Source: Zygnema circumcarinatum SAG 698-1b
Taxonomy: Eukaryota > Plantae > Zygnematophyceae
Length of the DNA: 64,000 nt
Assembly: GCA_037447605.1 (NCBI GenBank)
Contig: CM074815.1
Span: 1,922,001 to 1,986,000 of the forward strand
Direction: 5' to 3'
Shown piece after piece: positions 28,201 through 62,400 of this stretch. Position 1 is the stretch's first letter. Each line of letters opens with the position of its first letter. The position numbers and the translations under genes were made by a program. The notes beneath the pieces are model-generated. The model ran no database searches and was not told the DNA's origin. It saw only the letters and a list, made by a program, of their open reading frames with translations.

Positions 28201-31200
28201 CTCAGATGATTAACTGCATGCAACCTTCTTCATGTCAATTCTCTCCCTCTCACTTCCCCCCCCCTCCCCTCCCTCTCGTGCTTCGCTATCCACTCCTTCC
28301 CCTTCTTTGCACTCTCCTTCTCTCGATCTCCCTGCCTTTCCACGCCACTCCCCATCTCCTTCCCCTCCTCGTATCTTCTCTCCCTTCTCTGTGTATTCTC
28401 TCTCCTTTCCCCTTCCCCTCCCGTCCTTCTCCCCTGCATCGCTTTCATCTCCTCTACCCTTTTCTCTCTCACTCTCTTTCTAACCCTCCCTGTCTCGTCC
28501 GTTCCCTCCCTTTCCCCTCCCTCTCTCCCTCCCTTTGGCAGCTCCTGCAGGATTCTCTCTTCCCTCTCCTTTCTCTCTCCTTCCCCTCTCATATCCCCTC
28601 CCCCTCTCCCCCCCCTTCACATGTCCTGCAAGATCTTCTTCTCCCCCTCCCTGTCTCTTCCTTCCTTCCCCTCTCTCTCACCCCCTCTCTCTCTCTCTTT
28701 CCCCCTCCCGCAGACCCTTCAAGCTGGTTACCGACAGGATGGAGCGGAGGCCCGTGTGCTTGCAGATATAGCCCATGCTTTGGGCTGCCTCCCTTTCTTT
28801 CTCGCCATTGCAGGAAGGCAACTTGTAGAGGTCGGATTGCAGCCCTCTGAGCTTCTCCGTCTCCTGCAAAAGGACATTCCTTCAGAGTCAGAGAGTATAC
28901 AGGTCGACTGCTCCTTTCAGTCTCCCTCCAGGTTATCTCCCAACTCTCTAATTCCCACAATGTGAAAGCAATAAGAACGTTCGGCTCATGTAGAGCAGCG
29001 GAAAAGTGTTTCAAATGGAGGTCTGGGATTGAGATGTACATCTTCCTTGTTGCGTTTTTCACCACATTTGCAGCATTATGCAAAGTAGCGTAATGTTGTT
29101 CTCAGGTGTAGTTAGTTCCTCCTTCTACCTATGTCCAGTCAGACAAAGTCATCAAAATCCAGTTTTCGGTTGAAATGTAAAGAAGAGATATATGAGGTTG
29201 AAGTGACTGCATGAAGTGACCCATAGCAGCATTTCATGGTGGATTGTTTCGATCTCCCCTTTGTTGGAGGGCAGCATTCGAACGCTATTGGAGGAAGCAG
29301 TGAGCTCTCTCGCAGACAACAGGAGGGAGGATGGCCAGCTGGCAAAAGCAATGGTAGAAGTCTGTGGCTGGTTTGGGGCACAGCCCATTCCTCTCCCGAT
29401 TCTGACAGGGGCTGTCCGTAGATATAGGTAAGTGAATTTCCTGTCTCCCTCCCTCTCTTTTTCTCTCTCTTTCTTTCTCTCCCTCCCACTCTCCCATCCA
29501 CCTCCGAACCTTCCTCCCGGTTGCCCTGCCTTGTCTCCCATCCCGCCCCCCTCTCCCCCTCCCCCTCCTACTCCTCCCTCTCTTTCTCTCTCCAAGCATC
29601 TGATATGACGTTATCCAGACTTGGCCCTCCTTTCAAATCCTCCAGAACTTTTTCAACACTCCTGCGGGAGGCACTGTAAGACCTAGAGAAATCTTGAAAA
29701 TCAAACAGACCATATTTAAAAAAAAAAAAAAAAAAAAATCTTTACAAAACTTAAACCCCAATGTGAAAGTTGTGGTCTAGCAGGGGTCAAGATCCGAACG
29801 AATTCGACGACTCAGATCGTGCAGTTTCCCGCCTTCTAAAAATGGAGCTCGCCCAGCAAGAGCAGGCAGAGGGGTCCATAGTTTTCCATCCCCTCCTTCA
29901 AACTTTTTCTCGAAGTCGAGATTTTGGAGGGGCAGCTGCTGTGGCAGTTTTGAAGACTGTCGCAAATTCTCGATGTTGTGCCGAAACCGCTGACCATTTC
30001 GCTGCGATTTGGGAGAGGAAGGAGGAGTTGGTGAAAACCCATCCAATTGTTTTGGGGAAGGTGTTGGAAGTGGGGTTGAGTTTAGTGAGGTATGGAATCG
30101 ACAAATGGGATGCTCGTGAAGTAACCGATGTATGCGATCAAGTGTTAGAAATGGGTCCGATTATTGGTGAAATCCGACTTCACTTTTGGCAGCTGAAAGC
30201 GGAGATTTTGGGACAGAAAGGAGAGAAGGTAGCTGCTGCCCAGGAAGGTAGAAAATGCTTAAAAGCGATGCATGAAAACTTGGCTTCTGGGCCACTCGGA
30301 CTCTGTGCTTGGGCTGCAATTCTGATTCATGAAGTGGAGGGAAACTTGAAGTCATTAACAGATGCGGTTGATGAATGTGACTTGTTCGAAGAAGAGGCAA
30401 TGGAGCTCGCAGAGGGTGTGAGAGAGAGGGACAGCACAAGACCACTTGGAGAGTTTCAAGCAGTAGATGGAGATGGGGTTCTTGTAGTCGCTGCATTGAA
30501 ATCTATAGGCAAAGTGTATTCCCAAATTCCTGCTCTAAGTATGCAGGCTTTAGCACACGAGCTCACTGTTCTGAAACTCCAAGAGAGGGTTTTGCCAAAA
30601 CTGGACTCAGAAATTTCTGAAACTTGTTGGGGTCTTACTCTGCAGTATGCTGTTCTCGATGATCTATGCTGGCAGCAACAAGTCATATTGGACATTTTCC
30701 AACTCCCATGCGGAATTCTGACAATAGAAAGCAACCATTTGGGGACAGCACAGATGATTGACAGGTGGCAGGTTGTGAGCACACCCTCTTTGGGAGAGCT
30801 TCACTTTGACTTCCGCACGAGAGAGGAGGCAGGGAGAGTGTATGAGAAAGCGATATCTTCCTTAGTACAGAGTAAAGACCCCTCTTCTCTGACATTAAGG
30901 CTTCGCTGTGCTGCATATGCAGCCATGGCTGCTCTCACAAAGCGCCCGAAAGATAGGACTTGGAGGAGATCAGCAATAGCAGCAATAACCCAACTGGAAA
31001 AAGTGTTGGCTGCTTCAAAGGCTGCTAATTTGAAGACTTCAGAGACATATCATGTGGGAGTGTGGAAACTTGGTCTGTTATATGAGAGCATGGACCGGCC
31101 ACTCGAAGCGGAGGAAAGGCTTGCAGAATGGGTCTCATTAGGGCTCATGGATAAGGAAAAGGGGGGGTCATTTAGTAGGCTTGTAACTATGGCCTGCATG

Positions 31201-32245
31201 CTGATCAAACGGGGTAAAGTTACCGATGCTGATTTCATGCTGGAAAAGCGCAAGCAGCTCTTGGAATCGTCGCAAATGGATCGAAATTTCGAGTTGGCCC
31301 AGGTCTTTGCATTAAGTGGAGCAATAAAGTGGCTAAGGGGTCAAGCTGAGGAAGCACAGATGGCTCTCGAAAGGGCTCGAAAATTACTAAGGACATTACA
31401 TGCTCTTTATCCGTTGCAGTTGGCGGATGTTTTGGATGCTCTCGGGAGGGTTTCAGCACATAAGGTGAGAAAGGGGGATTGCAATGAGGCTGGAAATGCT
31501 TCAATCTTGAAAGCTCTTTGCTTGGGTGATAAAATTAAGGATTAGTGGGATTAGAGGATTAGTTTCAAGGCTGATTGAGTTCGAGTTAGGTGAACACATC
31601 ACTAGGACAAGAGCTATAGTTATTGCTAGGATTAGAGTCAGCGTTAGGCCTAGGATCATGGTTAGGCTTGGAGGTAAGGTTAATGTCAGGTTAGAGTAGA
31701 AGTAGAATTAGGGTCAGAGCTGTAGTTAGGGTTAGACTTACAGCTAGGATAAGAGTTATGGTGAAGACTGAAGTTGTGTTTTATGTGTGAGTCATGGTTG
31801 GGACAAGGTCAGGATCAGGGCTAGGTTTGGGTTTTAGGGCTAAGTTAGGGTTGGAATTGGTAGGCTTAGCATTAGGGTGACGGATATAGTTTGAAGTATT
31901 TGATCTTAAGAGTTTTGTGAATCTTATTGCGGACAGGGAGACCATATCCGGGCATTCGACCTATGGCAGCGCGCATTGAGTGCCCGAGAGGAGGTCATTG
32001 GGGAATCGCATCCCTGCCTCGCTTTCACTCTTACCAATATGGCATACATAGAAAAGCAGCTTGGCCGGATACATGCTGCAATGGACTTGAGAGACAAGGC
32101 TCTCCGTCTCATCTCAAAATCATCAGAAACTGACATTGTGCAGTTGCAGCAATTGATCGAAAGACAACTCAGGCGAGTCCCCTGCAGTGCTCTCACTGTG
32201 CTTTATCACAATCCTGTTCTCTGTTCTATTCAATGTGGAGCTTAA
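25220..32245 (+). CDS. STAND NTPase (NB-ARC-like) with C-terminal TPR repeats and an unassigned N-terminal domain; about 10 exons
   Basis: P-loop VLGLVGPSGVGKTQVALEY..YEAVLWLDAE (27364-27531); Walker B LIIVDN; sensor HILITS; GLPL-like LGCLPFFLAIAG; WHD-like VCGWFGAQPIPLPIL; kinesin-light-chain-type TPRs LADVLDALG../ALSAREEVIGESHPCLAFTLTNMAY. The start codon is uncertain. Confidence 0.85.
26417..26426. other. Assembly gap (10 N) in a G-rich intronic tract
   Basis: Run of n flanked by poly-G. Confidence 0.99.
31546..31885 (+). repeat. Degenerate TTAGGG-like tract in the last intron of the NB-ARC-TPR gene
   Basis: Repeated ggttag/ttaggg/gttagg variants (gttagggttagac, aagttagggttgg, attagggtc). 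Confidence 0.7.
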
Positions 32246-51481: not shown

Positions 51482-51758
51482 GCGGGAAGAGCGAGGGAGG
51501 GGGAGACACGTGGGCCTTGTACGGCATTTAAGCATTGCACTCGTGCAGGAGGCCGACAGCCAATGGCGACGCGCCACGTATGTATGTCTATGTGCATGGC
51601 TGAATGGATGCGGCATGGGTCTCATGCATGGCCATGCATGCCATCACATGGCCATGAGCGTGGGTCACATGCATGGCCATGTGCGAGCTGGGAGAAAAGG
51701 TTCGCCCTTGACTTTTCTTTCTCCGGCAGGAGCAGAGCGCTGGATGAGGGCGGCAGCC
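51482..51758. promoter_or_regulatory. Short divergent (bidirectional) promoter shared by the MBL hydrolase and the pLGIC
   Basis: Opposite-strand ATGs at 51481 (-) and 51744/51759 (+). Contains ccacgt and clustered CATGCATG/CATGG motifs. Confidence 0.6.
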
Positions 51759-54700
51759 ATGGCTGCCGGTCTGCTTCAGATGATTCTGTATATTGTGCTC
51801 CTACTGCTGCTGCTGAATGCAGGAAATGCGCAGCAGGAGCAGCCCTTCAGGGGGCTGGGAAGCACTCCGCCCAGCGACCCGACAGATGTCTACATTTCCG
51901 CTACGTTGGATCGTCTCCTCAGTGTTGACGGTTAGTGGTGGATGTGATGTGAATAGGAAGGAATTTGGAGAGAAAAATATCGGCAGTGGGACGATGGGAG
52001 GGAGAGAGGGGAAGGGAGCAGAGTGAGAAACGGACAGGAAAGCAGGAAGAGGGACAGCTTGAGAGAGGGCGAAGCGAGGAGAGGGTACAAGTGGTGTGGA
52101 TAAATGGGATGAAAGTGATACATACGGAGATATTTTTTGCAAGCAAGAATTGGTGATGGGATTTGGTACTCGGTTCCGTCTACGAGTTTAGGGATCACTG
52201 GGAAGCCCCTGAAGAAATTCACTGTAAAGTTTCATAGCGACGAAGGCTAATCTGAGGGACAATTTGAAAGGATATGGTTGTTAGAGTTGCTGAAAATTGA
52301 CAGATATATCGCCTCTTTTCCGTGGTTGTGTAACAGACAGGGGTTACCGCTTCACGGCGATCCTATTCATTATCATCAGCTGGACAGATCCACGAAGTAG
52401 GCACGCTTCATCTCTATCGCGTACTAGCTGCATTAGGGGATGTGCAAATGAATTTGTAGAGATGCATATCGACATGTGTAATGCATTCTTTTGGCCGCAT
52501 TAAACTCCTTAATGTTCTATACAACAGTATGGCAACACCACCTTAATTGTCGCATGAACTGCAGTTGTTCTCACTCACTGGAGATCTGAACGATTTAAGA
52601 TGAGATTGATTGATTTCAAGTTCAAAACGATAGGGATGAAACTAGCTCTGCTTTTAATGGCTTTGGTAACACTGCTACTCGACCTTTATTTGCAGCCTAT
52701 TCATCCATGCTGGCCAGTTTGAACAGCACTTGCAAGAATTATTGCAGCACTACAATACCGTCGTCTAACTCCTGTTGTGACAATATCTGGAAGCCTGCAA
52801 TTTACTTGAACAATGCCATTCTATTTTCAGAAGAACGCATCCTATATGGTAAAGTGCCTAGCTCCTTGGCTACATTGGGATGGGAGGAAAGCAAGTAGAA
52901 GGAGAGCAGAGAAAGAACGAGCAGGAGCGAGAGAGTGTGGGAACGTGAGGATCCATCTGCATTTCATGATTTTTACGTAGCCTTGGCAAAGACAGAACGA
53001 GGCTAATAAGTTTTTGCAGGTTTCTAAAACAGCAGCATTTCTAAAACAGCAGTTTTTCAACTAAAAAGGACACGGCTGGTTCTCTGCGTTGCTTCTATTG
53101 TACCATTTCGACCTTCATTGACTTGATGATTGCATTCAGAATGGCATGATATGTCTGAGGCTACATCCCAGTTTCTATGTAACTGTATTGGCTACAGAGG
53201 AGCTTCAAATCGGAGGCCGAAATAACTCAGGGGTGCAGTGGGTTCAACGTCTGCTAGGTGGTCACCTTTCTGCCCTTGCAAATAAGGAGAAGAGGAAAAG
53301 TTGATTTTTTTTTGAAATGTTGACGCAGAGAGGGAAGGGGCCAGGGGAGGGGAGAGGAGTGAGAGAGAGAAATGGAGAGCGAGAGAAAAAGGGGGTAGAG
53401 TGACTGATGTGAGGTTTCGAACAGGGAAGGTTGTTCGCAGGCACATATTCGTCTGCAATGAATTTCAAGAGCTTCCCATTTGACTCGCAGGTGCCATGTT
53501 CGTCCCACCAACTTTGTCGACAGACCTTTTGGGTTCATTCATGGTCACACTTAAAACATAAATGGGGATGAATATGAGTCATCCTTCTAATGTGTGCTAA
53601 GAGGATTTAAAGTTGGTTTGAAAATATTGTAGAGAAATTACCTATCCTCTTGTTTGATGTCCAAGTGCTTCATTTTCCAGGAAAGAGCAATGTCTAAAAC
53701 CATATAGATAGTAACTTTTCGTGTTCCCTTCCAACCTGGCTATTCAACGCACGGGGGCTCAAAGTCCTGCATAGTTTATGGTGTGGTCTTAGCAGGCGGC
53801 CATAAGTTAAGTCCCACCTGTTCCTCTGTCGAGTGTGCAGGAATTGACTATAGAGATGGAGGCAAAGGATAGCAGAGTCCGCCTGCATAGCAGCTCTGTG
53901 GGCCTAAGCACAGGCATCTTCAAACTTCTCGGACAAGGAGATGACGTGTCAGGATGGCGCGTAGCCTCCATGTCTATTAGTGTCCGTAATGGGTCAGTTT
54001 CAGCTAGCAAAGATGAGGTGGTGCAGCTGAGCAGTAGTGAGTTCATGCCCCCCCTGCCCCCCCATGCATGCATGGCACTTCTTTCATGGTCCTCTATGCA
54101 TGCCCCATATGCATGATGTTCCCTCATCGCATGCCTTTCATGCTTGATTCTGCATGCAAGGTTTCTTCAGTACAGACAGAGTATGCATGTTCCTTTCTAC
54201 TGGAGAGAGAAGGTATTCCTTTAACCGATGGCATTGGATGTGCAGACGACCCCCTGCCCTACTGCCTTCTGAACCCTAATTGCTCCTCGGCAACAGAAAC
54301 CTCGGTTGCAGACATTGTGCTGCTAGTCAAACGGCTTAATAACTTCTTTGTGATCAATGTACGGTCTTTGACCCTCCACCTTCTGAAGCTGTAATGGAGA
54401 TGCAGCACTCATCTTGCAATCTTTGAAGTGACTTTGAGAGCCGGAGGGAGGTAGAACTGAAGAGCGAAAAGTGTGTTGGCTGTGATGTGTATATAGCAGC
54501 GCCCTGTTTTTCTGGAGTTGCTGTATCTCTAGAGTCTCCTTTCCCTGTTATAATGGCATGGAAATGGCTGATTTCTCTCTCTCTCTCTCTCTCGCTCTCT
54601 CTCCACTTCTCTCGCCGTTTCCAGATGGTGATCCCTATCGCCTTCACCGTTGCCCTCTCGTGGTCAGTGTTTCTTATTGATCCTCAAAAAGTCGGCACCC

Positions 54701-56157
54701 GGGTCACAATCACCCTCTCCCTCTTCTTTGCACTTGTCTCCCTCACTTTCGTCATCAACCAGCAGGTTTACTTCCCACTCCTCAACTCAGCAAACAGCAA
54801 AAAGTCGATTCATTCCTCCGCTCTTCCACTTTCCTTCACCTCCCTTTGCTTTCTGCTTACTAGCTTTGCTTGTAGTCATTCGGCAAAGTCCGTCCTTATT
54901 TCGAAAAGGTGCTATCCGAGCTACTTGTGTTTTTTTCTTTTTTTCTTTTCTCATATATCTGAACTGCTGCATGGGTCAGCTTCCTTCATCCTCCTACCTC
55001 ACCTGCATCCATTGGGTGCTTAGTCTCTCATACGTGGAGATTGCAGCCGCCGATATTGAGACTCTCTTTGTACATTACTCCCTCCGTCAAGTAAGAAAAT
55101 CTGACGCATTTTGGCCTATTCGTGTTGACGGTTCATATAAGACAACTTCCTGCAGCTAATTGTAGACATACTTCGAAGTTCAGAATGGATCAGCTATGTA
55201 AAGCACAAGTGTGTATTCTCCCGTTATGTTGTAGTAAACAGAACGGTTTGACCTCTGCAGGACTCCATGGAGCGTAGAAGAGAGTGGAAAAAGAGGCAGG
55301 CTGACTTTAGGCCCCGCTCTGTCTATGGAAGATTGACTCCTTGGGGACTTGCTCTTTCCGTTCACTCAAGTGGCCCCTCCACAGAGGAGCTGCTAACTGA
55401 GCCGAATTGGAGAAATAGAAGAGGGAGTGGGAGTGGGAGAGGAGGGACTTCAGACTCCCCTGCCCCTAAAGAGGAGGTTGAGCCTCTGTTGCAGAGTCAA
55501 GGGTCCATTAGTCCGACTTGGAGGGGCAGTTCACGGTTGGGAGGAGGGTCTGGTAGTCAAAGGTTGGCAGAGAGGGGGCGTCTCTCTATAGGGAGGACGG
55601 AGAGGGAAGGTGCGAGTGGCAGGAGGCTCAGCAGCAGTGGGGGGGAGACAAGTAGTGAAAGGACGGAGGAAGGCAGTAGTAGTCTGGGGAGGAGGGAGAG
55701 CGATGATAAGGAGCGGCTTCAAAAGTTGATGGGGAAGTTGGAGGAAACCTTGCCAAGTAAAGAGGTGGTTCTGAGAACCGTCCTGGAGGGTTCCAGTTGG
55801 AGGGGAGAAGAAGGGCAGAGAATCTTTTCACGAAAGCATTTCAACAGCCTAAAGGTGAGAAGTTTCTCCTTTTTGAGAACCTTCGTTCGTTCTTATCAGT
55901 ACCTCTCGTTAGGGACAGGCATGTAATTTTTGTGTTTGTGAGAGTGTTTTTTGCAGGCCATACACAAAAAGCTGCCGAGGAAAACGATCTTCCGAAGGCT
56001 AAGCTCGGCTCGACGGAAGATTCAAGAGCAGGAGAGTGTGGAGGAAGTCTCTGAGGGCGTGCTGGTGATAGACCAGCAGTGCCTTGTGGCCTTCCCAATA
56101 TTCTATGTAGTATCTGTCCTTTTGATCCTTGGAAACTTTGTGGGTCGGCCGGCTTAG
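51759..56157 (+). CDS. Pentameric ligand-gated ion channel subunit (Cys-less 'Pro-loop' receptor); 11 exons
   Basis: Signal peptide MAAGLLQMILYIVLLLLLLNAGNAQ; DVYISATLDRLLSVD; SWTDPR; CCDNIWKPAIYLNN; loop 7 MNFKSFPFDSQ; GDDVSGWRV; pre-M1 VKRLNNFFVIN; M1 MVIPIAFTVALSWSVFLI; M2 RVTITLSLFFALVSLTFVI; LPSSSYLT then M3; long cytoplasmic loop; M4 IDQQCLVAFPIFYVVSVLLIL. Confidence 0.9.
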
Positions 56158-57001
56158 GCTGTTAACTGAGTGCTCCCTTTATGTAGGGAAATGGGCCCTC
56201 AATGTTGTTCCAAAAGTGTATATAATATTCACCCCATGAAATATAATCTGTGTTCAAAAAGTCGCTTCACCAAACAGTGGACAGTTAATTTGGTGTTGTA
56301 AATGCAAGCGTTATGTTCTGGAGGATGTATGGTAAGCCCTATGGCCTATGGGGCTTTGGCTTACCCTAGCGATGGCCATGCTCAATGTGAAACAATGCCC
56401 ATGGGCTCCATGGCCCATGGGCCATGGCTGGACAGCATTCATAAGTTTATGATGTCGGCCTGACTGGAAATTTCCATAGAACACGCAACCCACGAGCGAG
56501 TTTCGCAACCTTGGAATGTTCTTTGTCAGTTTTTGATTTTGTTCCGTAAGGAAGTTCAACTAGAACGTGGAACCATAGAACGGCCGTTAAACGGCTGCAC
56601 ACGTGGCGCAAAAGGTGAATGCTCGGAAGGATTCGCCGTACGAATCCGCATCCACTTTGTTGACTTTGGTTTGATCAAAAAAATGGGTTGATCTGGCGGT
56701 TGAGAAGTGGATCCAGAGATCCATGATCGTACTTGTACCGGTCTGTTTCTGAATTTGGTGGAATCAATCCGATCTTCTTTTCAGTCAAATAGGTTGTGGG
56801 GCCTTTACTTTGGCCAATGATGAGTCGACACGTGTATAGATGGTACACGTGGTATGTTAACATTGGATCGTACGTTTTTGGTGTTGGCGAGTAGAGGTCC
56901 GGAACGGGCTTTAACTCAACTGAACCGAAAGGATGCCGTACAATTTTGTACTGTACATGAACGTACGGACGTGCAAGTACAGCTTGTGGCAGGGAAAAAA
57001 A

Positions 57002-59460: not shown

Positions 59461-62400
59461 ATGGCTTCGTCTGAAGCAGCTGCGAAGCTGCGGGAACTTC
59501 AAGCGGCTCCAGGAAACAAAGTATGCGTTGATTGCAGTCAGAAGAATCCGCAATGGGCGTCGGTATCATACGGCATTTTCATGTGCCTTGAATGTTCCGG
59601 AAAGCATCGCGGCCTTGGAGTGCATATCTCCTTCGTTCGATCCGTCACAATGGATTCCTGGTCCGATATTAATCTGCGGAAGATGCATGCAGGAGGCAAC
59701 CTCGCCCTGAACGAGTTCTTCAATCAGTATGGCGTTCCAAAGGAGACGGAAATTGTAACAAAGTATAACTGTAAGGCTGCTGAGATCTATCGCCAGAAGA
59801 TTCAAGCCCTTGCTGAAGGCAGACATTGGAGCGCTCCTCCTGTTGAAAGGGTTGTGCTTTCAAGAGCACCTTCTAATACTTCAAATGCTCGAGCGGCTAC
59901 GAGGGCGAGTCCAGGCGGATTTGGAAGCTCCGACAGCTGGGATGACTGGGGGGACGGTTCTCAAAACGAGAACATGCGCAGAAATCAGTCTGCAAGGGAG
60001 TTTTCAAGCAACCGGCGAGAATCAGCGACTCATAAAACCCCTTCTAGTGGGGACTTGTATAGCAAATCGCAGCTGGAAGCATCAGCTTCCAGGAAGGAGA
60101 CTTTCTTTGCTCAAAAGCAAGCTGAGAATGCGTCACGTCCGGAGGGTATTCCTCCGAGTCAGGGCGGCAAATATGTCGGTTTTGGTTCTGCTCCAACGAA
60201 ACCATCCTCCAGCAGGTCTATGGCCGACGACGATGTCCTTACAAACACCGTTAGTGCCGTCTCAAAGGTGCTTTCCATCCTCTTGACCTGCATCTATTTT
60301 GCATGCTTGTTCTGTCCGCTTGTTGCTTGTCCGCTTGTCCGTCTGTCTGCTTGTTGTTGTTGCATCCGTGTGTACGCACAATTCGTTCTGAGATAGATGA
60401 ACGATCTGCATTTAACAACGACAAATTAATTCTTGCAGTCCGTGGGGGTTGCACCGCAAGCTAATTATGTTGCAAGCGTTTCTTTTCATGTCTACGAGGA
60501 TTATAGGTGTATGGAGTAGTGAGAATGCTATCATCAACAAACCCAAAGTGTCAAGTCGCACTTTCGGTCTGCGCTTGTTTCTCATTACTTTTGCTTTGCC
60601 TTGTTGTAGGGTTTTCGGACCTTGTCTACCGTGGCAGTCAGTGCTGCAGCTTCAGCTGCAGTTGCGGTGCAAGAGGGCACAAAAGAAATCCAGGCCAAGG
60701 TGAGTTCGCCCTTCCATTTATTGCCAACTAGCTGACTTAAGTCAGAGATTAACTCGCCCCTTTAATCCTCCCCTTTCTTCCCCAGTTTTCTCATTCCAAA
60801 GGAGATTTCTTGGACCCTCCTTTTCCAGTTATTGCTTTATTATCTTACCGCGTAGGACTTGACAAAGCTTGTCAACACGGAAGTTCAGGGAGCATTCAGA
60901 TCTGGTTGCATGAAGCAGAGTCTTTTGTATCTGTTTTTTTTTTAAACTGCAGCATGCTTATGGGAGGTCTTTGGGACTTTACCGTATCGGGTATACTGGA
61001 AATTTGTTGCAGTGTTTGATTTCTAATTGAGGTATGCTAAAGTTCGCTGTGATTTGGACTCTATAGACTGGTTACTCCTGGCTGCCCTTAGAAGCCATTC
61101 CATTTTGTTTGGGTTGCAATATGTGAATAAAGTTTAGAAATAGTCCATAGTGACGTTTCTTACGGCGAAGCGGCAGAAGTGTCTGTTGTTTCTAATCCCT
61201 ATAGCATGTAAGTTAGCTTGGTTACTATTCATCCATTTCTGATTGTCATTTAGAAGCTAGAGTCACGATCATCAAAATTGCCCAATGCTGTTCTATACTA
61301 TGCGTGCTGGATTTGGTTTGTTTGAAAGTGAACTGTCTGCGTCTTCCATTTTCCCCACATTCTTCTTCAACACCCCTAATCTGTTCCATTGCCGATCTCC
61401 CACTCTTGAACCAAACAACCTTCCCCCCATCCCCCCTTCTTCCTAAACCGCTTAGAGCCTGGTATACAGTGCCTCAGTCTTAGGTCCTCTTAGGCTTACT
61501 CTACCAAACTAGTGCAATACAATGGTGTAGCTGACGGCTTTCTCGTTGAAATGAGGGTAAAGGTGCTCGTGGGTAAGTAGTAGATAAGTGGGATGATTTT
61601 TCTAGCGCTTCACCATGACATGCAACTTAGAAAACTTCATAAAGAGAGTAAAGTGAAATGAATATTTTTTTGGCATGCTGTCAGCTTTCATCCCAAAATC
61701 TAATGATCCAAGTGATTCATTTAACTGTCTGAGAGGATTTTTAGGTTAATTTATTGGTATGTCTCTTGGCTGCCGGATGACGTCTGCAAGTCGACCAATC
61801 TTAGTGATAGTTAATAATTTCTACTGAATATTTTCTGGGTTTGGATCATGGATCTGACCATTTCAAATTTTTTTCTGCAGGTGAAGGAGGGTGGCTACGA
61901 TAAGCAGGCTATGGAGACAGCCTCTGTAGTAGCAGCGAAAACTACAGAAGTCGGGCACAAAGCGTGGACCTTTGTGAAGGCATTTGCCGTAGCTGCAACG
62001 CAGCACGTGGAAAATTATACGAAGGATTCAAATGATCAGTCTGCGTTTGGAGTGCAGACAAGGAACCAAAATGGGTTTTTAAGTTATGATAAGAGTACTG
62101 AGGAGGAGAACGACAATTTGGTGAGGGGGGGAGGCGGGAATTGGAATGATAGCAACATACGGGGAAGTCAGCGAAGTACGACCAGTGGTAGTAGAAAGGC
62201 AGAGGATGAATGGGACAATTGGGGCTCCGGTAATAGGAGCAGCGCAGGCCCTCGAAGTACTGGTTGGGGTGGATGGGAGGATGAGAATGGAGGGTCTGAG
62301 AGGAAGACACAGACGGGTGGATCAGGGAGAGACTTTCAGCAGGCAGAAACAGCTACTAACAGAGTGAGTGGTTCAACTGCAACAGGTGGAAAGAGTGGTG

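Follow-up and report, generated by a model that had tools for sequence, protein, structure and literature searches.

Gene Structure and Transcription

The window (the whole 64-kb stretch of DNA that was analysed) contains a complete and transcribed gene for a Cys-less pLGIC subunit. The gene was rebuilt at 51759-56157 on the forward strand, which also carries all exons described below. It consists of 11 exons and 10 introns, all of the latter being GT-AG. The coding sequence of 1851 nt has an intact ORF with a single terminal stop and specifies a protein of 616 aa. Spliced joints for all 10 introns are present in transcript contigs from four runs (X17, X7, X8 and X13), which represent four separate studies, and read depth at the locus is several-fold higher in exons than in introns. 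The transcript contigs begin at or before 51706, and their 3' ends reach approximately 56265. A reading made from the sequence alone (the sequence-only reading) had proposed this span with 11 canonically spliced exons and had named the lack of a spliced transcript as a reason to abandon the proposal. Its coordinates are matched exactly, every joint is seen in RNA, and spliced contigs come from all four studies.

Exon 1 (51759..51930) contains the start codon, the signal peptide (residues 1-24, nt 51759-51830, assigned by hydropathy) and the beginning of the extracellular domain. Its joint to exon 2 (51930/52337) is present in four runs. A second in-frame ATG is found at 51744, 15 nt upstream of the start and in a weaker context, and may give five additional residues. 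The acceptor of exon 5 is at 53441 in runs X7, X8 and X13, and at 53425 in run X17, where the exon is extended by 16 nt and the frame is shifted. No pLGIC paralog is found within the 64-kb window, and the ORFs flanking the gene have no Pfam match.

Assignment to the pLGIC Superfamily

The spliced protein was compared to a reference profile built from 151 bacterial or metagenomic pLGICs; this is distinct from the Pfam models themselves and thereby an indirect match to the two domain families, although most of the 151 members are annotated with PF02931 (Neur_chan_LBD) and/or PF02932. Over its length the protein reaches 133.5 bits (E 5.4e-37); by domain, the scores are 48.9 bits (extracellular) and 75.3 bits (transmembrane). 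The profile reports none of 1500 shuffled copies, which places the assignment far beyond chance. When phmmer was run against proteins annotated with both PF02931 and PF02932, E-values were as low as 2.6e-17, and one single alignment covers residues 39-377. A profile computed from nine relatives and six exons of the gene matches DeCLIC, ELIC, sTeLIC and GLIC with E ~1e-50. Pfam scores for single exons are weak because the exons are too short: exon 8 by itself matches Neur_chan_memb (PF02932) with E 0.0014 and 19.4 bits (cut-off 28.1), exon 11 by itself matches the C-terminal end of this model with E 0.11 and 13.2 bits, and the exons of the extracellular domain are too short to score. The M1-M2 exon, when used as the single query, has no match at E 1 among PDB sequences. 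All seven of the most conserved superfamily residues (Table 1 of PMC4795631) are found at the aligned columns. By these homology criteria, assignment of the protein as a Cys-less ("Pro-loop") pLGIC subunit is confirmed.

Domain Organization

The predicted topology places the extracellular domain at the N-terminus and the helices M1-M3 behind it, with a cytoplasmic loop separating M3 from M4. Hydropathy segments are located at residues 1-24, 261-288, 293-314 and 584-614. The extracellular part, which has four N-glycosylation sequons, is predicted to be a beta-sandwich domain of ~240 residues. Exon 2 (52337..52396) covers the beta1-beta2 region with W73-x-D75-x-R77, and these columns hold W in 144, D in 125 and R in 126 of the 151 relatives. 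Exon 3 (52696..52848) encodes a Cys-rich insertion (C90, C94, C104, C105) and loop A (W109-K-P111), while exon 4 (53198..53257) encodes the beta5-beta6 region. The Pro-loop, which is the "Cys-loop" without its cysteines, is located on exon 5 (53441..53490). It reads F160-P161-F162-D163-S-Q (F-P-F-D being encoded by nt 53473-53484), and its P and D are invariant at the aligned columns in all 151 relatives. The two Cys-loop positions, 13 residues apart in the disulfide pair, are occupied by S153 and L167, so that the pair is absent.

Exon 6 (53841..54036) covers beta7-beta9 with the conserved beta9 Trp (W204). Exon 7 (54246..54358) encodes loop C with C237 and C243, which brings the number of extra extracellular cysteines to six, and also the pre-M1 linker with R260 (nt 54332-54334). 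M1 with its kink residue P272, the M1-M2 loop and the pore helix M2 are encoded by exon 8 (54625..54765). Exon 9 (54980..55090) continues with the M2-M3 loop, which has the motif L316-P317-x-x-S-Y, and with M3 (residues 322-346, nt 54998-55072). M3 has a moderate mean hydropathy of 1.32, near the value of M2, and contains E335, D340 and E342. R260, W204, P272 and P317 are all at conserved columns. The bulk of the ~240-residue cytoplasmic M3-M4 loop, which is S/R/E/G-rich and belongs to no Pfam family, is encoded by exon 10 (55261..55854). Exon 11 (55957..56157) provides the end of this loop, M4 (residues 590-612, nt 56074-56142) and the stop codon. The hallmarks claimed in the sequence-only reading (signal peptide, WxP in loop A, FPFDxQ, pre-M1 Arg, M1 Pro, M2, LPxxSY and M4) could all be located, as could the extra extracellular cysteines; the claimed absence of the Cys pair is borne out by the Ser and Leu at its two positions.

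Pore and Predicted Selectivity

The pore residues of M2 are K290 (-4'), G292 (-2'), R294 (0'), S300 (6'), F303 (9'), F310 (16'), N313 (19') and Q314 (20'). Ser at both 6' and 13' is unusual for these positions, and a 9' Phe is known from a minority of family members, 13% (PMC4795631). From -2' to 0', the selectivity motif is G292-T293-R294, which is neither the cationic G-E-K/R nor the anionic P-A-R/K motif as defined in PMC4795631. The bacterial relatives have acidic rings (E/D at -2', D at 19' and E/D at 20', in 124-145 of the 151), whereas the protein has Gly, Asn and Gln at these positions, so that no acidic ring is left. From the neutral residues at -2', 19' and 20' and the Lys at -4', we predict that conduction is anion-preferring or weakly selective rather than cation-selective, with the caveat that sequence is an unreliable guide to ion selectivity outside the metazoan Cys-loop clade (PMC4795631). 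As a natural eukaryotic Cys-less channel without any acidic ring, the protein would be useful for selectivity work.

Host Lineage

The pLGIC gene lies between other eukaryotic genes, and a plant-type ArfGAP gene is located 3.3 kb downstream. The closest match of this ArfGAP is from Coleochaete scutata (66%), followed by land-plant AGD6/7 (~60%), and no chlorophyte is among the named matches in the best 120. The ArfGAP branches outside the seed-plant clade. From this placement, the host is a non-embryophyte streptophyte, that is, a streptophyte alga and not a chlorophyte, as judged from the flanking gene. This agrees with the streptophyte neighbourhood that had been claimed earlier, and speaks against a contig of chlorophyte origin, which had been named as a possible refutation.

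Contamination by bacterial or animal DNA, or an assembly artefact, was considered, with nothing found in its favour, and rejected on the basis of the 10 spliceosomal introns confirmed by RNA. This explanation is effectively refuted, given also that the unspliced stretch is 100% covered in six DNA-type runs (four samples, three studies), that eukaryotic genes, including the plant-type ArfGAP, are found on either side, and that the GC content of the coding sequence (0.517; introns 0.444) is like that of the neighbouring gene (0.511).

Relatives and Possible Origins of the Gene

Relatives were searched by several routes. With the M1-M2 exon as query, phmmer was run exhaustively over 1.84 billion representatives; a bacterial pLGIC with 48% identity was the one genuine match, the other two being artefacts from repeat proteins. 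At E 0.001, this search found no eukaryotic pLGIC; the protein itself and any ortholog of it were also absent from the results. A profile search with the exons aligned under bacterial scaffolds gave exclusively bacterial-type proteins among the best 120 listed, of which 119 belong to a ~400-aa family (with one named member, from Pelagibacterales) and the remaining one is P0058. When metagenomes were scanned with the exon, only intronless bacterial genes were found. The searches run retrieved no ortholog from other streptophytes, and no syntenic pLGIC is present on the ArfGAP-bearing genomic contigs of two related algae, the flanks of which are too short. All relatives that were compared are intronless bacterial or metagenomic genes with at most 26% identity. 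In a tree of bacterial relatives, the protein is on a long branch (2.96), outside all others and not nested in any sampled group. It should be noted that all sequences compared with it in this tree are of bacterial type, and that the use of bacterial proteins as search seeds biases the sample.

The literature reports pLGICs from Chlorophyta and from many protists, but not from land plants (PMC4795631, PMC11085791), in agreement with the distribution assumed in the sequence-only reading. Surveys interpret the presence in chlorophytes and absence in land plants as loss along the streptophyte line (PMC4795631, PMC11085791). As the sequence-only reading had proposed, the gene may descend vertically from an ancestral Cys-less pLGIC of the green lineage, from the stock also found in chlorophytes, having been kept here and lost towards land plants. 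We consider this a serious possibility, with a chance slightly below even. It is consistent with the eukaryotic clade formed by the Cys-less pLGICs of Chlorophyta and protists (PMC4795631), with the ten spliceosomal introns, the long eukaryote-type cytoplasmic loop and the host-like composition, and with the isolated position of the protein in the tree. However, it is at odds with the M1-M2 exon search, where the sole genuine match is bacterial, and with the failure to see an ortholog in any other streptophyte. If inheritance was vertical, the loss occurred later than the chlorophyte-streptophyte split.

Alternatively, a bacterial pLGIC may have been transferred to a streptophyte alga in the distant past, with introns, signal peptide and long loop being gained later. 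Every retrievable relative being intronless and bacterial or metagenomic, with a bacterial protein as the best M1-M2 match, points in this direction, and so does the stretch inserted between beta2 and loop A, which resembles that of the Pelagibacterales-type family. Ser/Leu at the two Cys positions is what prokaryotic members typically have (PMC4795631), but it is common to eukaryotic Cys-less members as well, and the prevalence of bacterial relatives has to be read against the biased search sample. Identity of at most 26% to any bacterial protein and the lack of nesting in sampled bacterial groups imply that any transfer must be old, and the ten introns and host-like composition fit such an old event. 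We regard transfer as possible and rather unlikely.

Proposed Function

The reading that we favour, and consider likely, is that the gene belongs to the nuclear genome of a streptophyte alga, where it is resident and transcribed, and that it encodes a Cys-less pLGIC subunit, which would act as follows. With the signal peptide cleaved off, the beta-sandwich domain of ~240 residues would face the exterior of the cell or a lumen. The channel would be a pentamer with M2 lining its pore, and its ligand, a small molecule or an ion from the extracellular side, would occupy sites between adjacent subunits. Binding would be relayed via the salt bridge between the F-P-F-D loop and the pre-M1 Arg, together with the M2-M3 loop, and a hydrophobic gate formed by F303 (9') and F310 (16') would open. 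Anions leaving a walled freshwater cell by this route would depolarise its membrane. The S/R/E/G-rich M3-M4 loop forms a cytoplasmic domain of eukaryotic type that probably serves regulation or trafficking.

The transcribed gene might also encode no working ligand-gated channel, the subunit being in decay or repurposed, e.g. partner-dependent or non-conducting. The odd pore (9' Phe, Ser at 6' and 13', acidic rings absent), the acidic residues within M3, the frameshifting splice variant in run X17 and the lack of a paralog in the window and of any ortholog found would fit such a fate. Yet the ORF of 616 codons is intact over 11 exons, all seven coupling residues are retained, expression is consistent across four independent studies, and the 9' Phe occurs in other family members at the frequency given above (PMC4795631). 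We consider the loss of a working ligand-gated channel quite improbable.

With the gene taken as encoding a channel subunit, the part in electrical or chemical signalling suggested by the sequence-only reading is a candidate function, and studies of ligand-gated electrical signalling in algal relatives of plants gain a concrete candidate gene that can be cloned. To our knowledge, a physiological role is known for no non-animal pLGIC. It is tempting to speculate that this is the plant lineage's own receptor, vertically inherited, anion-conducting, mediating externally triggered depolarisation in algae and later lost by land plants, but this combination as a whole is unlikely.

Comparison with Known Systems

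Among the known systems closest in description are the Cys-less pLGICs of Chlorophyta (Chlamydomonas, Chlorella; Jaiteh, Taly & Henin 2016, PMC4795631) and other unicellular eukaryotes. These are likewise encoded by eukaryotic nuclear genes, likewise lack the Cys pair around the F/Y-P-x-D loop and have all coupling residues kept; the host here is, however, a streptophyte alga.

The structurally solved bacterial pLGICs ELIC (2vl0), GLIC (3eam), sTeLIC (6fl9) and DeCLIC (6v4a) have the same two-domain architecture, with Ser and a hydrophobic residue instead of the Cys pair. ELIC likewise has a Phe at 16'. Compared to its bacterial homologs (identity at most 26%), the protein has in addition a signal peptide, the Cys-rich insertion and the ~240-residue M3-M4 loop, whereas bacterial relatives of 350-400 residues have room for a short M3-M4 linker only. 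At 9', Phe replaces the Leu of the bacterial relatives. The best end-to-end single alignment (residues 39-377) is to a Pelagibacterales (SAR11)-type marine family (P0037, P0076), and a Cys-containing insertion between beta2 and loop A is common to both. The members of this family are, however, intronless, ~400 aa long and ~25% identical; their M3-M4 linker is short, their pore rings are acidic, and the tree does not group them with the algal protein with any support.

Metazoan Cys-loop receptors (nicotinic, 5-HT3, GABA-A, glycine, GluCl) are alike in topology, long M3-M4 loop, signal peptide, the core of Pro-loop, pre-M1 Arg and M2-M3 Pro, and the basic residue at 0'. The algal protein differs by the missing disulfide pair, the G-T-R motif and the lack of an evident loop B aromatic. 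By its predicted sequence features, it is outside the strict (metazoan-type) Cys-loop receptors, lacking both their Cys pair and their selectivity motif. A full-text literature search found no report of a pLGIC in streptophyte algae, and an intact expressed member in such an alga would widen the range of the family to Streptophyta. This is not a new kind of system; it is a known family, with its range extended to a lineage for which no earlier report was found.

Gene structure and transcription

The channel gene (51759-56157, + strand) was modelled from the three forward frames of 51700-56200, with GT..AG boundaries picked so that the frame stays open. This frame reading gives 11 exons, all on the + strand: 51759-51930, 52337-52396, 52696-52848, 53198-53257, 53441-53490, 53841-54036, 54246-54358, 54625-54765, 54980-55090, 55261-55854 and 55957-56157. 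Introns are 102-406 nt long, and the 1851-nt coding sequence, with one stop, which is terminal, yields 616 residues. A second in-frame ATG at 51744, 15 nt upstream, lies in a less favourable context; a start there would lengthen the protein by no more than five residues.

All sampled words of the locus (100%) are present in six DNA-type runs from the same organism, and further runs hold 53-68% of them, as expected for transcripts. Contigs of four transcript-type runs, each from a separate study, were placed on 51500-56500. They span ~51706 to ~56265, join exons 6-7-8 and continue into exon 10 or exon 11, and exon depth is several-fold higher than intron depth. All 10 introns occur as GT..AG joints where the model puts them, in each of the four runs, the sole exception being the intron 4 acceptor in run X17. 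There, the exon starts at 53425, 16 nt upstream of 53441, which shifts the frame and leads to an early stop; the productive acceptor at 53441 is used in the other three runs. Because all 10 introns are seen spliced in four runs, the gene has a spliced transcript, the lack of which would have spoken against the sequence-only reading. One transcript contig, found in X17 but in no other run, has a 100-nt stretch 5' of 51745 without a match anywhere in the 64-kb window. This extension could be a distant alternative 5' exon, a product of trans-splicing or a chimeric contig.

The palindrome CATGCATG and the sequence CATGGCCATG form dense clusters at 51560-51700, 54040-54160 and 56340-56430, that is, just 5' of the transcript start, within intron 6 and just 3' of the gene. 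CATGCA/TGCATG, the same core as in the RY element to which B3-domain factors of plants bind, reaches 7-9 sites per 500 nt there (window mean 0.7). At 54073, contigs break or continue into other sequence, and for this reason the clusters may be a dispersed repeat. Purine-rich GGGAGAG/GAGAGA low-complexity tracts lie at 51940-52100, 52880-52950 and 53300-53420 (introns 1, 3 and 4). The loose ends of several RNA contigs lie in these tracts and lead into similar sequence from elsewhere; the tracts are therefore a dispersed, transcribed simple-repeat family. Elsewhere in the window, a long ORF (29770-31545, + strand) has weak TPR matches.

Family assignment and protein anatomy

Judged by its sequence, the protein belongs inside the pLGIC superfamily and outside the Cys-loop receptors proper. 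Taken singly against Pfam, the short exon 8 (M1-M2) matched positions 1-46 of Neur_chan_memb below the cut-off (E 0.0014), and the likewise short exon 11 matched the M4 end of this domain (E 0.11). An exhaustive phmmer search of 1.84 billion representatives returned one genuine match to the M1-M2 exon, P0003, with 48% identity. Its contigs are intronless and tightly packed and a PrsW protease gene adjoins it, so P0003 is bacterial. Metagenomic loci found with the same exon are also intronless genes, aligning continuously to residues ~24-361 with 19-33% identity.

Searches seeded with P0003 and with an alignment gathered 151 pLGIC relatives, most with precomputed PF02931 and/or PF02932 annotation. 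The spliced protein matches them with a best E of 2.6e-17, and one of the alignments runs without a break over residues 39-377. A profile of all 151 scores 133.5 bits (E 5.4e-37), of which the extracellular domain (39-212) has 48.9 bits and M1-M3 (248-354) 75.3 bits; none of 1000 globally and 500 locally shuffled copies of the protein was reported. A profile of nine relatives plus six exons of the channel gene matches DeCLIC, ELIC, sTeLIC and GLIC at ~1e-50. The superfamily's seven most conserved positions (Table 1 of Jaiteh et al., PMC4795631) are all retained at aligned columns (F160, P161, D163, W204, R260, P272, P317). The Cys-loop disulfide positions are S153 and L167; a polar followed by a hydrophobic residue is the pattern of bacterial, Cys-less sequences (PMC4795631), and the 151 relatives have A/S/G and then L. 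The profile match, the seven residues and the Ser/Leu pair bear out the earlier identification as a Cys-less pLGIC.

Hydropathy places a signal peptide at residues 1-24, M1 at ~266-288, M2 at 294-316, M4 at 590-612 and M3, which is less hydrophobic and carries E335, D340 and E342, at 322-346. The M3-M4 loop has ~240 residues and is S/R/E/G-rich. Since the bacterial relatives, with 350-400 residues, have room for a short linker only, this loop is a feature of eukaryote type. Four N-x-S/T sequons lie in the ectodomain. Its extra cysteines, already pointed out earlier, number six: C90, C94, C104 and C105 in an insertion before loop A, and C237 and C243 in loop C. The large family of Pelagibacterales-type marine pLGICs (P0037-type, ~400 aa, the one named member being from Pelagibacterales) has this beta2-loop A insertion in common with the channel protein (residues 85-108), the common part being Cys followed by S-x-x-P-S-x-N. 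Other bacterial groups, e.g., P0058, lack it.

Host and origin

An AGD6/7-type ArfGAP gene starts 3.3 kb downstream (+ strand; exon 1 59461-60267, further exons to ~62500). Its 269-residue first exon has an ArfGap domain (E 1.5e-34). Among the best 120 of 3243 homologs, from protein collections that do not hold the window's own proteins, the closest is from an algal contig (68%) and the best named one from Coleochaete scutata (66%), followed by Selaginella and seed-plant AGD6/7 (~55-62%). None of these 120 is named as chlorophyte, and bryophyte-level identity was not seen among them. In the tree, a strongly supported clade of seed plants excludes the protein, which clusters with Coleochaete and unnamed sequences. 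By this one neighbouring gene, the host is placed as a non-embryophyte streptophyte, in accord with the sequence-only reading and not with a chlorophyte contig. Coding GC of the channel gene, 0.517, agrees with that of the ArfGAP exon, 0.511.

The earlier statement that chlorophytes have pLGICs and land plants do not agrees with the literature. A 2016 survey reported them in Chlorophyta and many protists, with none in multicellular plants (PMC4795631), and a 2024 review inferred loss in the streptophyte lineage, land plants being devoid of them (PMC11085791). It is quite possible, if short of probable, that the gene is a green-lineage pLGIC retained vertically, as was originally proposed. The exhaustive M1-M2 exon search found no eukaryotic protein past E 0.001, and the metagenome scan with this exon no ortholog. 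Two related algal contigs with the same ArfGAP lack a pLGIC; their flanks are short and uninformative. An ancient transfer from bacteria, among which the sole M1-M2 exon match lies, is somewhat less likely than vertical retention. A recent transfer from the sampled bacterial groups is excluded because identity to any fetched relative is at most 26%, the branch is long (2.96 substitutions per site) and, in the tree of fetched relatives, the protein is nested in no sampled bacterial group.

Pore and comparison with known channels

Pore positions were numbered by setting the M2-M3 proline as 23'. They are K290 (-4'), G292 (-2'), T293 (-1'), R294 (0'), T296 (2'), S300 (6'), F303 (9'), S307 (13'), F310 (16'), N313 (19') and Q314 (20'). 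Bacterial relatives have Q/E/D at -4' (146/151), E/D at -2' (145/151), L at 9' (151/151), D at 19' (144/151) and E/D at 20' (124/151), whereas the channel protein has Lys, Gly, Phe, Asn and Gln, respectively. Thus, every acidic ring is neutralised, and the inner mouth gains a lysine. At -2' to 0', the motif G-T-R corresponds neither to G-E-K/R (cationic) nor to P-A-R/K (anionic), and a 9' Phe is found in 13% of the family; selectivity calls from sequence are unreliable outside the metazoan clade (PMC4795631). The chances are about even that the pore is, as predicted, anion-preferring or weakly selective, with a hydrophobic constriction of the 9' and 16' Phe as its gate.

Full-text searches, covering the main text of articles outside subscription journals, turned up no paper describing a streptophyte pLGIC; a genome paper may still list one without comment. 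The gene adds a new member to a known family, from a lineage without an earlier report. It extends the range of pLGICs solidly and its pore is unusual, but as a system it is not of a new type.
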